63,190 nucleotides of DNA, filler included, from Pelomyxa schiedti (GCA_020536535.1; 8 parts of 8 records of this genome joined end to end with filler, not necessarily neighbours in it); one strand, 5' to 3'. Positions 1-8,147 are shown, counted from the first letter of the whole stretch. Made by a program: numbers and translations. The notes: generated by a model not told the origin, from the letters alone.

Positions 1-121
1 GTGCAGGAGTGTCCAGTTTACATGCTGTTGGTGGTTGGTCAAACGTGAGTGGAAAATTTGGAGAATTCAAAGATGTGCTGGCTGTTTGTGTGTTCGTTAC
101 AGGTGCCGAATCCATCGAGGA
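1..121. repeat. Exact 121-bp copy of 1369-1489
   Basis: Direct sequence identity at offset 1368. A more diverged copy lies at ~1710-1850. Confidence 0.95.
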
Positions 122-1995
122 AGCAACCAGTGAAGAATCCATGGTTTTGCCTGTTTGGGAGAGTGCAAACATCCAGTGTTGTCCTCCCTGTGTGTTACAT
201 GTAGATGCGAAGAAGAAGCGAGGTGGGGTGACTCGGTGAAAACCCAAAGGAGGGAAAAAAGAAACCTGGGCTTGTTGGATAAATCAAAATGCACCCAGCT
301 CGGAAATCTTCTTTCGTCAATTGGAGTTCTGTTGTGGCCTCTGATCCACGTGTCTGCCAATTTCAGAAGATCAGCGTGGCTAATTATAAATAAAAGAACT
401 TGGCTTGTCACGTCACCTTCAAGGCGCTCTTCTCATTGGATTGGCGGCAAGCATCAAGAATGCCGATCGTCAGATCGGAGTATCTCTTCATTACATCAAT
501 CACAGTGCCAAGCATTGGTGCTTTGACATCCATGAGGTCATAACTGGTCTCTGTGAAAGCACTCTCGTCTTCTGTCATCAGCAGGAAGTTGTGTCCGTCC
601 ACCTGCCTTCCGTGTCCTGCAAAATAAAAGATGCTTGCAACCTAATACTATCTGTCATTCCCAAAATTTGACACAACAAGAGAAAGAGACCACCAAACCT
701 TGTTTCCTGCCCTCTTCTGCTTGATCAGTGCTTCTTTGAATTTTCGCAAGTTACTATTAAACACGTCGAGATTTGGTACATTCTTGTGGCATACCACTTC
801 AAATTGACATTTGTTCTTCAGGAACTGCATTGCCGTCAATGTAACAACAAAACAAAGTTTGTTTGGGAAAGCGGAAGAAACCTCACAAATGGAGTCTGCA
901 TCATTGATGGCGTTTTTGAGTGAACGCTCCCCATAAGATTGATTTCCAACAACAAATGCAAAGCACTTGTACCTCATGTCAGCACCGAAAAGGGGTTCTG
1001 CTCCCACTGAAAAAAAAAATAGTGAGAAAAAGCATAGAGAAAGCGGAGGATCTTGTCTCTTGCCAATTGCCAACCTATCATCGACTTGAGGGAACTGTGG
1101 CACGATTGCTCTTGACAGCTTCTTGCCAAATGCATTTTGACTTCCTCGACAATGAATTCTGCATCACCAAAAACGAGGCCAAGGTCACACAATTTCTGCA
1201 CGGAGCAATTGGCAAGTGTTCTTCCTCTCAGTTTATTCGCTCTGATGATTTTCAGGCAGTCGTCATCCACACCAACAGATTCAAGCCACAGACAAGTTTG
1301 GTCTGCATTGGCTGTTTGAATTTGAAAGGGTGTCTCTGTTTCAGCACTCGTGAGTGTTCCAGGTGTTTGTGCAGGAGTGTCCAGTTTACATGCTGTTGGT
1401 GGTTGGTCAAACGTGAGTGGAAAATTTGGAGAATTCAAAGATGTGCTGGCTGTTTGTGTGTTCGTTACAGGTGCCGAATCCATCGAGGAGTTTGGCAACG
1501 GCAACGGTTGGTGGTTGTCTTGAGGAATTAGAATGGTTTCAGGTTTTGGTGCAGTTGTTGGAGGCTTGCTTGGGAGTGACAGTCTCAGAGAATTCAAAGG
1601 AGATGTGGGGGCTGTGGGTGGTGTGTTTGTTGCAGGAGTTGGAATTTCTGAGGGACTTGTCTTTAATTGGTTATGAAGTGGAATTTCACTGGTGAGCGTT
1701 TCAGCTGTTTTTGCAGGAGTGTCCAGTTTACATGAGCCTATTAATGACCGTTGGGAAAACGGGAGTGATAAATTTAGAGAATCCAAAGACGTGGGGGCTG
1801 TTTGCGTGTTTTCTACAGGTGCCGAAGTCATTGAGGAGTTTGGCAACGGTTGTTGGTTGGCTTGTGGAATTTCTTCAATTGGTGGTGTTGCTGACATTGC
1901 CGATGGAGTCTGTGCAGAACTTATGGGTGATCTTTTGAAGTTACTCTCGAAGTATTCTTTGCCTGTGGCGAGAGCCATTGCATTCGGGTGTGACC
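39..1995 (-). CDS. P/T/S-rich linker + SAM domain + caspase-like peptidase C14 (p20 intact, p10 truncated by a duplication junction); probably the C-terminal part of the LRR gene
   Basis: SAM-like CLWLESVGVDDDCLKIIRANKLRGRTLANCSVQKLCDLGLVFGDAEFIVEEV splices in frame (intron 1074-1007) to YKCFAFVVGNQSY...LKNAINDADSI...VASIFYFAGHGRQVDGHNFLL...IGILDACR...TRG...GCILIYPTSPG...NHGFFTGCFL. His and Cys catalytic motifs are present. 5' boundary is uncertain. Confidence 0.85.
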
Positions 1996-2329
1996 CTTTT
2001 TGGGAGGGATGGAGGGAAGATTCAGTGGATGGTGGAATATGGATATTTCATAACTGAGGGGGCGATCATGTGAATCAAGAATCTCAATGGGAATTTCAAA
2101 AAGGTCATCAGGGAGAGTGTTTCCAGGGCCTCCTGAGACAAGCCAAATGTCTGCGTTCAGGGGGTATTTCGTGCCACCAACAGTGGGGCATGAAAATGCA
2201 GATGTTTGAGGTGGTTGCAGAAAGACCAGAAGAGAAGCACCCAAAGTGGGATGGATCACCCAGGTAAACCAAAAGAGCTGTATCTCTGTCGATGAAGGGG
2301 TCACCACACAATGGAGCAATGGCACATAC

Positions 2330-3960
2330 CTCCGAGACCCAGAGACGCGAGTGACTTGTTCAATTTGAGTGCTCTCGCAATGCTTGTTGCTCCCTCACTC
2401 CCAATTTCGTTGTCTAAGTGATGTTTGATTTGAAGAGGTCAACCACCATCTGAGAATTGAGAAACGCAAAGAACGATGGGAACACACATGATATATTCAG
2501 AGACACGAGTGACTTGTTCGATTCGAGTGCCCTCGCAATGCTTATCGCTCCTTCACTCCCAATTGTGTTGCCTGAGTGATGTTTGATTTGGAGAGTAAAC
2601 CATGACACGAGAATTGAGAGAGAGCACAAGAGGAACACACCTGATATATTCAGAGTCACGAGTGACTTGCTTGATTCAAGTGCCCTCGCAATAGTTGTTG
2701 CTCCCTCACTCCCAATTTTGTTGTCTGAGTGATGTTTGATTTGGAGAGTAAACCACCATTCGAGAATTGAGAGACACCACAACAGAATGATGGGAACACA
2801 CATGATATAATCAGAGACACAAGTGACTTGTTCGATTCGAGTGCTCTTGCAATGCTTGTTGCTCCCTCACTCCCAATTGTGTTGCCTGTGTGATGTTTGA
2901 TTTGGAGAGTAAACCACCATCCAAGAATTGAGAGACACCACAACGGAACGATGGGAACACACATAATATATTCAGAGACACGAGTGACTTGTTCGATTCG
3001 AGTGCCCTCGCAATGCTTATCGCTCCCTCACTTCCAATTTCGTTATCTGAGTGATGTTTGATTTGGAGAGTAAACCATGATACGATAATTGAGAGAGAGC
3101 ACAATGGAACGATGGGAACACACATGAAAGATTCAGAGACACGAGTGACTTGTTCGATTCGAGTGCTCTTGCAATATTTGTTGCTCCCTCACTTCCAATT
3201 TTGTTGCCTGAGTGATGTTTGATTACCCGAGAATCGAGAGAGCACAAGAGGAACACACACATGATATATCCAGAGACACGAGTGACTTGTTCGATTCGAG
3301 TGCCCTCGCAATGCTTGTTGCTCCCTCACTCCCAATTGTGTTGCCTGTGTGATGTTTGATTTGGAGAGTAAACCACAATCCGAGAATTGAGAGACACCAC
3401 AACGGAATGATGAGAACACACCTGATATATCCAGAGACACGAGTGACTTGTTCGATTCGAGTGCTCTTGCAATGTTTGTTGCTCCCTCACTTCCAATTGT
3501 GTTGTCTGAGTGATGTTTGATTTGGAGAGTAACAATGATACGAGAATTTAGAGAGAGCACAAGAGGAACACACGTGATATATTCAGAGACACGAGTGACT
3601 TGTTCGATTCGAGTGCCCTCACAATGCTTATCGCTCCCTCACTCCCAATTGTGTTGCCTGAGTGATGTTTGATTTGGAGAGTAAACCACAATCCGAGAAT
3701 TGAGAGACACCACAACGGAACGATGAGAACACACATGATATATTCAGAGACACGAGTGACTTGTTCGACTTGAGTGCCCTCGCAATGCTTATCGCTCCCT
3801 CACTTCCAATTCCGTGGTCTGAGTGACGTTTGATTTGGAGAGTAAACCATGACACGAGAATTGAGAGAGAGCACAATGGGAACACACATGAAAGATTCAG
3901 AGACACGAGTGACTTGTCCGATTCGAGTGCCCTCGCGATGCTTGTTGCTTCCGCGCTCCC
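2330..3960. repeat. Tandem array of ~137-161-bp exon+intron units (LRR cassettes)
   Basis: 11 near-identical copies of GAGTGACTTGTTCGATTCGAGTG... Introns are also homologous (GTGTGTTC...CAAATCAAACATCACTCAG). Confidence 0.97.
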
Positions 3961-4103
3961 AATTTCGAGGCCAGGCTCCGCACACACCCAATCTTGGTCA
4001 CTTTGTTCGAGACTGGTGCCCCGAGAGGATGATTGTTCGGCCCCCTTCGGGTCAGTTGGTGGGGGAAAAAAAAGGGGGGGAACCTAAGTCCCCGACGTAC
4101 CAT
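2330..4103 (-). CDS. N-terminal part of LRR receptor gene: ATG micro-exon, myristoylation motif MGAEQS, 11 RNI/NLRC3-type leucine-rich repeats (one 84-nt exon per repeat)
   Basis: ATG at 4103-4101 is followed by a GTACGT...CTGAC...AG intron (4100-4045), giving MGAEQSSSRG...EIGSAEATSIARALESDKSLVSLNLS. Ten 84-nt exons follow at 3818-3735, 3657-3574, 3505-3422, 3344-3261, 3207-3124, 3046-2963, 2885-2802, 2724-2641, 2571-2488 and 2413-2330, each encoding xNxIGSEGAxxIARALESNKSLVSLxxS. Confidence 0.9.
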
Positions 4104-4164
4104 GGCACCTTCGGTTACTTTCAAATTCCACGAAATTAACGTTCATTTCGGCCGGTAAAAATGA

Positions 4165-7100
4165 TCATGACGACGAAGAGAGAAGCACGGAATTGGCTGA
4201 AACCACGAGATCTGTCGCCGTGAGGGAGGAATTGTGTGCCTTGAGTTGGAGTGTGAGCCACCTCCTGGATTTCAGTGCCAGCATCTCCCACTCATCCTGA
4301 TACTCGCAAAACTTCATATGCAGACTCGCCAGTGCTGTTGGTTTTTGGTTTGGAAAGGAAATGGTTGGTGGAAGAAGCAGGATTTGTGAAAGTGTTACCG
4401 ATTGCAGTATTCCAAAGGGATTGGCAGTTTTCCAGACCTCGAATTTCTGCGGGCATACTTTGGAGGATACGCTCTGATGTGCAACCTTTTCGTGCATTAG
4501 ATGGAGAGGAAATTGCCACATCAGGCCCACCAATGACTGAGGCTATTCCCGCAAGAGATTCAGGCCAAGAGCCATCAGAAGACTGAAGAAAGATCAACTT
4601 GTCAAGAGGTCTCACCTATATGTCATTCATGAATGGTCATTTTGGTGAGAACTGAAAAGGACAAATAAATAATATTCACCTGTGCCCCACTAGGAATATC
4701 TTGATCGATCCCTTTTGTAACGTCTGTTCTCCTTGATGAAGTTGTCGTTTGGGCACTTTGCTCCTGCTCTCTGCGTGCGTCTTTGGCTCCTTTTGTTCTT
4801 GCCATTGGTAATTCTGCTTCTTCTTCCTGGCGTCTGATTTCACCGACACAGCGTCTTTTAGAGAGTGTCTCTTCTCGGCGCTGCTTTCTCAGACATACTA
4901 CTGATTCCATCCGCAACCTTTGAAGTTCTCCCATTGCCCTTTGGCGACTTTCCTCCAGTCTCTGCCTTTCAATCTGCTTCTCTTGTTGCCGCTCCTCGCA
5001 CTGCATTCTTGTGCGTTCTTCTTGTCTTAACTTCTCCACTAGTTTTTCTCTCTCCATCCTGCGCTCTTCTTCCATTCTCCGCCTTTTTTCCTCTTCAATC
5101 CTCTCCCGTTCCAATTCTCGTTCCTCCCTCTCTGTTCTGGCGTTCTCTCTGCGTTGTCCAGTTCTTGCAGACGTTGTGGGCCGCACATTCAATGGAGAGG
5201 GGGGAGCAGATGGTACAGCAGCCTTGCTTATGCTCCCACTTGAAGGGGATAGAACACTTGAAAGTGATGTGGGAGACTAGATATGCCATAAGAGCCCCAC
5301 ATAATTAATACAGATTAGAGAGTGAACGGTTTTTTTGAGTTGAAAGAAGACTGAAAATACTGTGTGCTTCTCTGCTTTTGAGGCATACTCCACTGTGCGA
5401 AGTTGCATTGGCTCTGGGAGAAGATGAATCAGGGGACATTGAATCAACCATATGGTACCATTTACTGCTTCACTTCTGGTTTCCACACAAATAAACGTCG
5501 TGTACTTGCTTAGGAGCTGATATTTCAAAGCCAAGTCAACAATTTGTTGTTTATTCTCTGGGCTCTCTTCCAGGTCTCTACCAGATTGTTTAATTTTAAG
5601 CGTGCAGAGTCAATGGAAAGAATTCCTTTATTACTTGATGAGGGAGTGGAAGGCTAAGCGGTGTATTGATTTCCCAAGCTGAATTTTGGAGAGTGACAAC
5701 CTCACTTGTATTGGTTGTTATCAATCTGAGAAAAGTCTTACTGAAAAGGGAATGATATTTCTTGCTCATTCATGAACCCACGTACTCGCCCAGTGGATTC
5801 ACTTATATTATCAGTATTACCTAAAAACCCATACACTGGGGATTTTATTGGTCCGTTGTAAAAGAAAAGATCCAGGGAGTGATACCAAGTAGACGGTCAC
5901 CGTCAAACAGTGGAGGAACCAAAGCAGGAGATTGCTTTGCTGAGATAGTACCCCAATTAATTTCCACATTTCTAAGCACTGGCTGAAGTGCTCTCTTTAT
6001 TTGAGACATGACCTTGGACTCCAGTCTTGTTCCAGAGGAAATAAATTCTGCCTGAAATCTGTTAAGTCCCAAAAACGGCATCTGGTTACCTTGCCCCGTG
6101 TGGCCACAGCAAGACCTGTTAAATCTCACTATGAGGCTGTGGAATGCAATAGAAACAACCTGTAACAAGCTGTGGGCTGGCCTCAGCAGCTATCCCAAAG
6201 GTGAAAATCCTGGTCCCCCCTGGAAATCGTAACTTTTATTGGGTAACAAAGGGAAAAACCAGAATGACATTTCACGAAAGAAATTATGGCATTGGTGTCA
6301 CTAACATCCCCATCGGTCTTGGGGGTAACGTTGATAAAATTCAATTTCATGTGGCACTTACCAAAAAAAAGATTTGACGAGGTACATTGGGCTGAGGGTT
6401 GTGTAATAAAATATCCTGTAAAGGGGGAAGCACGTCAGTCCCTCCCAAATCAGCTCTCAGAGCGGTAATATGAGCTTTTGCAATAGTGAAGCTAATGTGC
6501 AGGTGAATAAGGAGACACGATAAAAGGTGGCAAACGATTGTTCATCGTAGGGAATACTTTCCCCAAATAACTTTTCGAAACGTGAACCAAACCCAACGAC
6601 TGATTGGAAGTCAAAGTGGGAAATGAATGAATGAGAACATACTGTTAAAGGTGCAGGTATTAGGAATGCTGCGCAAAAATAGTTGCATGGCATTTTTCAC
6701 TTGATTTATGCGTGTTCCAGACATACTTCCTGAACGGTCAACAAGGAAAATGAGCTCACAAGCAGTGTCTTGCTCAGTTTTTATGCTCGGGAAAAGAGAA
6801 ATCATGGCCACTTTGGATAAATCCTCATCCTGAAAACCTTAATCAAGATAGGAAGCTAGCACACCTACTTGCTCAATTGTTATGTACACAGAATCAGGAT
6901 TTACATTTGGCACAAGGATGAGCTCAAACCAGAATACCTCTGTGATCTGGAGAGATGGTAAAGGAATACTAATGCCTGAAGTGGCATACAGTTGAAAGTG
7001 TTGCTTTGATTGAAGACATAACCCCCTCAGTACTGCTAGAAATGGGATGTGAATGCTCAATAGAAGCAATTACTGCCGGTGCTTCAATGTCTCCAGAAAA

Positions 7101-8147
7101 CAAGAATCCGGATTCCTTGGTGTCCCCCTCCAAATAATTAAATTATAGTGTGATTGAGTTTTGGGAGAAATACCTCTCCAGAAATGGGTAAACAATGTGT
7201 ATTGGGGAGCTCGAACCTAAGGTGACCCTGATCATAATATAGCTCTAAATGGGCACATATCAGTTCTCATATACCCGAATATTTATGGCCAACCGGAGAT
7301 ATACTTTAGAGTTACAACAGCAGAAGAATGTGGTGGAAGATTTCCTATCTGCATCCTTAGCACAGCTCCCTGAAGGGGGTCTACTTCTAATTTTCCAGAT
7401 GTCACAACTAAGAATACGATTGGAGTCAAGAAACCTTTTTCAAGTAGATATGCACCATGACCACTAGCAATGGCATCATCATACTGGAGTGTGAAAGTGC
7501 AGTAAGGTGTTTGTTAATCCCTTCCATCTTGTTTTTATATAAAACCTTATTTGCAGCACTCTGTTTTTCCTGTATAACACCCTTAATTACACGGTCAGCA
7601 ACTCTAACCTCCAGTTCATAAACAGAGCATTCCCCAGGAGCAAACTTGAATCTGCAGTGCAATTAAAAATTCATTCCATTTTATATGGATAGACAGGTAA
7701 TTACTAGCAGCAACATACTGGAAAAAGGCACACATGCACCCACTGTAAAAAAAAAAAAACTTCTTATGTCACGAGTGACACCCCGGACAAATAAATCACG
7801 CAAGCATACACAGCCTCAATTGGGCAATCTTCGCGGTTCACGAAAGTGTGCACCATTGTCACGTCGGCAGTCACCCCAGTCACCCTCACGTCCACTCTCA
7901 GTCCCACGAATGGGCTTGCAGATTCACCACTGCCATCCCGCGTTCCTGTTGTTGCCGCTGTTGTTGTTTTCGGTCTCGGGATGAATACGCCACTGTAGGG
8001 GCGCCCGTATTCGACCAACTTGGTGGGGATTGGTGGAGACGGCGGCGTTGTGGTGGCGATGGCCTGTAGGGAGGGAATTGTGGGAGGGGTGGTGGTCGCG
8101 GTCGATACGGAGGCAGGCGTGCCGGTTACCCCCAACCGTTGGTCCAT
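4165..8147 (-). CDS. VIT + vWA domain protein (VWA5A/BCSC-1-like) with coiled-coil insert; multi-exon
   Basis: VIT: VTADVTMVHTFVNREDCPIEAVY...LEVRVADRVIKGVIQEK. vWA MIDAS: ELIFLVDRSGSMSG. Also ALKYQLLSKYTTFICVE, LIFLQSSDGSW and C-terminal EWEMLALKSRRWL. Confidence 0.88.

Follow-up and report, generated by a model that had tools for sequence, protein, structure and literature searches.

Gene structure at the locus

The window, meaning the whole stretch of DNA analysed here (63,190 nucleotides (nt), filler included, joined from records of the Pelomyxa schiedti genome GCA_020536535.1), opens with a minus-strand gene running from position 4103 to about 122. Its predicted product consists, in this order, of an MGAEQS start, 11 leucine-rich repeats (LRRs), a linker rich in Pro, Thr and Ser (P/T/S), a SAM domain and a C14 protease with its His/Cys dyad. 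The locus belongs to contig C1297, and the genome searched comprises 52.4 Mb in 5,337 contigs. The published assembly was obtained from the amplified DNA of a single cell, by SPAdes with a largest k-mer of 121 (PMC8887013). The model contains 19 exons and 927 codons with zero stops in a local frame check, for which alone the joined spliced model was used; the search queries were single exons or deposited proteins. All 18 introns are GT-AG and 44–78 nt long. The features are listed below in the direction of transcription.

4101–4103, minus strand: exon 1, start codon only, followed by a 56-nt phase-0 intron (4100–4045)
3888–4044, minus strand: exon 2, GAEQSS start of the N-myristoylation type and degenerate LRR1 (predicted model)
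2330–3818, minus strand: region of exons 3–12, ten 84-nt phase-1/1 exons with one 28-residue RI-type LRR each (Pfam LRR_6, RNA joints)
2055–2285, minus strand: exon 13, 77 codons (RNA joints, paralog matches)
1328–1995, minus strand: start of exon 14, a short conserved motif, then the P/T/S-rich linker (sequence)
1112–1327, minus strand: SAM domain, five helices, with a basic mid-loop and an acidic helix-5 start (weak Pfam match; fold match on a paralog model)
1007–1074, minus strand: 68-nt phase-1 intron between the SAM exon and the protease (removed in RNA contig X1 record 1)
882–1006, minus strand: protease exon 15, with an S1-pocket Asp (902–900) equivalent to MALT1 Asp365 (RNA and alignment)
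699–824, minus strand: protease exon 16 (RNA contigs and model)
417–641, minus strand: core exon 17, with His (614–612), S1 Asp (455–453, MALT1 Asp462) and Cys (449–447) (RNA and alignment)
266–353, minus strand: protease exon 18, whose first residues are the conserved L4-loop RG (RNA contigs and model)
115–187, minus strand: protease exon 19, with S1 Asp (173–171, MALT1 Glu500); the exon breaks off near 115, shortly upstream of the donor position of the paralogs
1–121, no strand assigned: contig-end copy of 1369–1489 (100% identical in self-comparison), replacing the last intron and exon

The RNA evidence is made of assembled Logan contigs from one study, and such contigs do not prove single molecules. 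They provide a spliced run from the linker through the SAM domain to exon 18, together with three spliced introns of the LRR array (joints 2413/2488, 2570/2640 and 2724/2802). The 68-nt intron between SAM and protease had been proposed in the initial annotation and is removed in the RNA as expected. The same annotation had placed one intron of ~330 nt between LRRs and linker, which is wrong. The RNA joints 2285/2330 and 1994/2054 reveal two introns of 44 nt (2329–2286) and 59 nt (2054–1996), flanking a coding exon of 231 nt. A single gene joining LRRs, linker, SAM and C14 protease without a NACHT domain is supported by these joints, by the open frame and by the same order at nine other loci.

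The MGAEQS start, also part of the earlier claim, is formed by joining the ATG at 4103–4101 to the exon 4044–3888 across the 56-nt intron. The RNA contigs leave 3823–4116 uncovered, and the start exon is a prediction. The same split start (ATG, intron, GG) is found in paralogs on C1567 and C721, and the N-termini of paralogs read MGAETS, MGGQTS or MGAEQS. Gly2 and a small residue at position 6 are features of N-myristoylation, and the genome contains a gene for N-myristoyltransferase. The deposited protein P0128 (977 aa) has the same layout, but keeps the intron 3887–3819 in frame and reads through into the contig-end duplication. The repeat pattern favours splicing of this intron, which lies in the region outside the RNA cover.

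The LRR array is a tandem repeat of exon and intron units with a period of 161. It holds 11 repeats, as initially described; these have 28 residues, the first one is degenerate and the other ten are each encoded by one exon. The array matches Pfam LRR_6 (E 2e-49) and follows the RI-like 28-residue pattern LxxLxLxxNxI. At concave positions the ratio of nonsynonymous to synonymous changes (dN/dS) was 1.47 (bootstrap 1.17–1.76), against 0.24 (0.20–0.28) at other positions and 0.55 at exposed positions of the helix side, in a crude test in which pairs are non-independent, gene conversion is ignored and no codon model is used. This comparison covers 56 distinct LRR exons from seven loci, with four concave-face positions picked from the LRR consensus. 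The residue at the exon junction, located on the concave face with its codon split by the intron, takes 16 identities across the LRR exons. The LRR branch of the family also displays recent copy gain, changes in repeat number and decay. Arrays of the same type of LRR exons lie on C720, C2066, C995, C617, C733, C815 and C2132, where the protease finds no match.

About 100 residues following the LRRs (window 2285–1930), including a hydrophobic stretch, are kept among the LRR-type paralogs. Fold prediction of exon 13 with the next motif gave no usable model (predicted local distance difference test score, pLDDT, <50). The linker, correctly recognised at first, is 45% P/T/S and contains an internal duplication, 1345–1501 resembling 1687–1849.

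The 3' end of the gene is broken. Since window 1–121 copies 1369–1489, the end at 39 given by the initial annotation is not a true stop; both this end and the deposited C-terminus were discarded, as they stem from reading on into the 121-nt copy. The false join at 121/122 sits on a 7-nt microhomology, and the length of the duplication equals the largest k-mer of the assembler on amplified DNA (PMC8887013), which counts against a real rearrangement. An amplification or assembly join is the most likely origin. In seven close paralogs a splice donor lies a few bases past the break, and complete family members finish in a last exon of ~45 residues. RNA loose ends at 115–118 enter such a last exon, but belong to other paralogs. 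Sequence matches reveal an orphan last intron and exon at C1104:19396–19616, which sets in at the break and has 90% identity to the paralog on C933 (92% for the window); C1104 gave no match to the protease core. Given this start and the similar identity to C933, the missing last exon is probably the one on C1104, and the gene is probably complete in the cell.

A paracaspase-type protease preceded by a SAM domain

The motifs FYFAGHG and ILDACR, noticed from the beginning, contain the catalytic His and Cys, and the domain is recognised as Peptidase_C14 (E 1e-19). The His is conserved in 13 of 13 aligned proteins and the Cys in 12. Three Asp residues of the C1297 protease align to MALT1 Asp365, Asp462 and Glu500; two of them are conserved in 12–13 of the 13 proteins, and the third one in 10. 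In MALT1, these residues set the specificity for Arg (PMC4357240). The acidic S1 pocket, as in MALT1, thus predicts cleavage after Arg and not after Asp.

The structural model was that of the paralog P0004, ~80% identical to the C1297 copy (pLDDT 86; six core strands and a hairpin). MALT1 was the top match of P0004 by profile (E 1.6e-27), by Foldseek and by VIA-align (Z 25.4), in which caspases reached Z 22.7 and metacaspases 19.4. For the C1297 copy alone, MALT1 was also first in the profile ranking, weakly (E 0.039). Judged by its dyad, acidic S1 pocket and modelled six-stranded sheet, the protease is of the paracaspase type of C14. The proportions of nonsynonymous and synonymous differences (pN/pS) in its core give ratios of 0.19–0.59. 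Loop L4 has an almost invariant RG, at which the protease might cut itself. The last strand of the fold is missing from contig C1297.

Other assignments were rejected. A metacaspase would have an eight-stranded sheet instead of six core strands, and metacaspases, with Z of at most 19.4, were absent from the top 60 profile matches. An orthologue of MALT1 would carry death and Ig domains, whereas Pfam gives LRR, SAM and C14 only. An NLR or STAND receptor would have a NACHT or NB-ARC ATPase, and none was detected in the deposited protein of the locus or in its paralogs. Paracaspases become active when they dimerise along strand 6, whereas metacaspases work as Ca2+-dependent monomers (PMC4357240). 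By analogy, the paracaspase topology lends support to the earlier idea of activation by induced proximity.

The SAM domain had been named as such at the outset. Its five-helix fold is recovered on the P0004 model (Z 8.0–8.9, root-mean-square deviation 1.7–3.1 Å to the SAM domains of CNK, PHC3, Scm and DGK-delta), whereas the Pfam score of the C1297 copy stays below the cut-off (E 0.017). In 12 of 13 family members, the mid-loop carries a charge of +2 to +5 and the start of helix 5 one of -2 to -4, a polarity which is the reverse of that of ANKS3. SAM domains of known families assemble head to tail, and these opposite charges would fit self-association within the family. In the protein P0008 the SAM is more canonical and lacks the charge reversal. 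SAM matches of the family type also occur on C1366, C630, C141 and C2141, without a protease core nearby.

The SAM-paracaspase family and its relation to known systems

The protease core exon has 26 matches in the genome, and 22 of them have a SAM match at most 1.2 kb upstream on the same strand (28 SAM matches in total). By sequence, at least 22 loci thus share a SAM-paracaspase cassette, which the initial annotation had missed. The LRR-SAM-protease order is found at ten loci, C1297 included. Deposited members carry as N-termini LRRs, Sel1, MORN (two), ankyrin with a PARP-regulatory domain, TRAPPC13 with Ras, a second C14 domain, or an unannotated segment, and several unrelated ones begin with MG. 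In a quick tree, 17 C-terminal protease domains form one group (SH-aLRT 97) and the six LRR-type members a subgroup (100); this tree is unrooted and contains no MALT1 or Dictyostelium rows, so that donor and order of events are not derivable from it. The deposited proteins are labelled NLRC3, NOD3, protein kinase or RIT1, which hides the shared cassette. NLRC3 and NOD3, the labels of two paralogs, reflect LRR similarity alone.

Outside Pelomyxa, the matches cover only the protease with at most 37% identity, and are bacterial where named. The SAM profile matched 16 Pelomyxa proteins, and neither the remaining proteins retrieved nor any of the 61 metagenome loci. The metagenome scan returned protease-domain matches only (21–34% identity), with no SAM, and the Atlas searches gave no cluster with SAM and C14 and no usable match to a whole paralog. 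SAM and C14 were found in one protein nowhere outside Pelomyxa, in searches that favour close relatives and cover protists thinly; other lineages may have fused SAM or LRRs with C14 independently. No paper retrieved in the literature search describes the SAM-paracaspase cassette, its LRR form or any caspase-family protein of Pelomyxa. Judged on these sequences, the cassette is a conserved unit combined with many unrelated N-termini, and the family appears to be specific to Pelomyxa. Each part is known, as are chains of repeats, SAM and enzyme.

The closest counterpart of the protease is MALT1 (C14B) of the CARD11-BCL10-MALT1 complex, the best structure and profile match, which shares the dyad, the acidic S1 pocket and six core strands ending at the equivalent of strand 6. 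The identity is only 16–19%, and unlike MALT1, the Pelomyxa proteins contain no death or Ig domains, carry SAM and a variable front end in the same chain and number at least 22 paralogs. Paracaspases have been placed in animals and dictyostelids by one review (PMC3417536). The nearest relatives outside Pelomyxa are bacterial caspase-like Peptidase_C14 proteins (27–37% across the protease domain), in which fusions to Sel1, MORN, TPR and other repeats occur as well. Their protease is often N-terminal, with no SAM in those retrieved, whereas the genes of Pelomyxa contain many introns and group in a single clade.

In SARM1/TIR-1 (ARM-SAM-SAM-TIR), a repeat domain, SAM and an enzyme switched by clustering are united in one chain. 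Tankyrase (ankyrin-SAM-PARP) offers a similar likeness, with repeats, SAM and a clustering-activated enzyme (PMC4980433, PMC9712121). Unlike both, the Pelomyxa chain ends in a protease and has a single SAM of reversed polarity and an LRR front; homology is limited to the SAM fold. NLR inflammasomes also combine RI-type 28-residue LRRs with a caspase-fold protease as output. In contrast to them, the Pelomyxa protein has no NACHT/NB-ARC, CARD or PYD, and its protease lies in cis with a predicted Arg specificity. The candidate receptors of Ectocarpus (LRR-ROCO and NB-ARC-TPR; PMC3341825) share one-repeat exons, rapid gene birth and death and diversification of repeats; the likeness is limited to these traits, since their effectors are GTPase or STAND modules of another lineage and that of Pelomyxa is the SAM-paracaspase.

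Several further genes were observed. Contig C721 (20200–30100 and 95800–99800) holds three LRR-SAM-paracaspase genes, two of them in direct tandem, and the deposited annotation divides the first one (P0130, P0002). By eye, P0007, P0012, P0013 and P0129 have a common N-terminal segment without a Pfam match. P0008 and P0018 contain two C14 domains per chain, P0018 having also dynamin-like and kinase domains and no SAM match. C14 genes outside the SAM family occur at L001 (C511:3452–4195), L002, L003, L006 and L011, some with long open frames; one such gene carries a DCCR motif. Upstream of the LRR gene, a minus-strand gene (window 4165–8147) encodes a VIT domain, a vWA domain and a charged region that resembles a coiled coil. 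This gene ends ~60 nt before the ATG of the LRR gene, and its 3' exon is found in RNA contigs. Downstream of the stop of the C933 paralog (L020:1152–1220), a repeat of ~70 nt recurs on at least 25 contigs with 82–90% identity, possibly a small dispersed element.

Possible mechanism and alternatives

Known paracaspases cleave behind Arg residues and have to dimerise through strand 6. By analogy, we lean slightly towards a mechanism in which the binding of a ligand to a membrane-tethered repeat domain is followed by clustering of the SAM domains, dimerisation of the paracaspases and cleavage at Arg. The protein would be held at the membrane through an N-myristoyl group. Its LRRs would bind a ligand, probably of microbial or symbiont origin or a modified host protein, and binding would raise the local concentration or lift an inhibition. 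The SAM domains would then self-associate, basic mid-loop to acidic end-helix, and neighbouring proteases would dimerise and cleave Arg sites in their targets, perhaps in their own loop L4 first. Such a one-chain device would operate in the manner of SARM1 or of the MALT1 signalosome, without an ATPase.

P. schiedti hosts three prokaryotic endosymbionts, and vancomycin eliminates the bacterial ones (PMC10579272). A further-reaching interpretation, which we put forward tentatively and consider possible but short of probable, is a stand-alone family of cytosolic immune receptors, independent of STAND ATPases and death-fold adaptors, in which diversifying one-exon LRRs act as sensors and a charge-reversed SAM polymer activates a bacterially derived paracaspase, possibly policing endosymbionts or invaders. 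The expression “inflammasome-like” of the initial annotation can be retained only as an analogy: with an S1 pocket that is acidic as in MALT1, the protease is not a caspase cutting after Asp.

Several points weigh against the proposed clustering mechanism. Many SAM domains do not polymerise, and variation at the concave positions of LRRs is seen in numerous repeat proteins. The fold was predicted from P0004 and not from the C1297 copy, and no single RNA contig runs from the LRRs to the protease with the letters of that copy. Finally, front ends with MORN, Ras or TRAPPC13 point to a role of some family members in membrane trafficking rather than immunity.

This last point belongs to the strongest alternative, which we find somewhat doubtful: a constitutive signalling or trafficking protease, assembled always or according to its concentration, with repeats that only select substrates or membranes; it would involve neither a foreign ligand nor a function in immunity. 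The inclusion of a dynamin-kinase among the front ends, the MG starts of several unrelated members and the common use of repeat domains as substrate adaptors all agree with it. Against it stand the concave LRR positions outpacing synonymous sites, and the gain, repeat-number change and decay of LRR copies, which resemble the brown-algal candidate receptors (PMC3341825).

Another alternative accepts the family and takes the C1297 copy for a mosaic or dying gene, whose array may pair with the linker of C1567 or whose 3' break is a rearrangement removing the dimerisation strand. C1567 (L067, C1567:1–4687) is a loop-like contig with both ends inside exon 13 of the window at 100% identity. A further MGAEQS gene on this contig has ~16 LRR exons, and its linker, which is frameshifted and truncated, occurs in RNA contigs; this gene may give an LRR-only product. 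The RNA contigs mix the two linker types: X1 record 1, which spans SAM and protease, has linker letters of the C1567 type and matches the C1297 copy exactly in exons 15–18. The near-identical second copy tangles the assembly, and the joining of the LRR array to the C1297 protease is therefore uncertain. The architecture is independent of this tangle, as nine other loci keep the same order. With the last exon absent from contig C1297, a defective copy might be suspected, but the frame is open, the catalytic residues are intact, RNA with the C1297 copy's own linker letters exists (X2 record 9), and both the orphan exon starting at the break and the k-mer length of the duplication argue otherwise. 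We regard this alternative as unlikely.

A division into two genes, one for the LRRs and another for SAM and protease with its start near 1980, which the initial annotation had named as the outcome contradicting it, is very improbable: an ATG is present at 1978, but the RNA joints largely refute such a start, as contigs splice LRR11 to exon 13 and to the linker exon in frame, the order is repeated at nine other loci and the deposited paralogs are single proteins. Equally implausible is a true Asp-specific caspase (C14A) of the caspase-1/inflammasome type, rejected despite fold matches to caspases up to Z 22.7 because the S1 residues are Asp/Asp/Asp instead of Arg/Gln/Arg and the motif is DACR, not QACxG.

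To our knowledge, the sensing of intracellular microbes in single-celled eukaryotes is largely an open question. The family described here gives concrete candidates in a free-living anaerobic amoeba with three endosymbionts, among them a candidate one-piece immune receptor whose SAM-protease part can be tested in vitro. It also adds the Archamoebae to the lineages bearing paracaspases. If the proposed clustering mechanism is true, SAM assembly would be a further route to the activation of a caspase fold.

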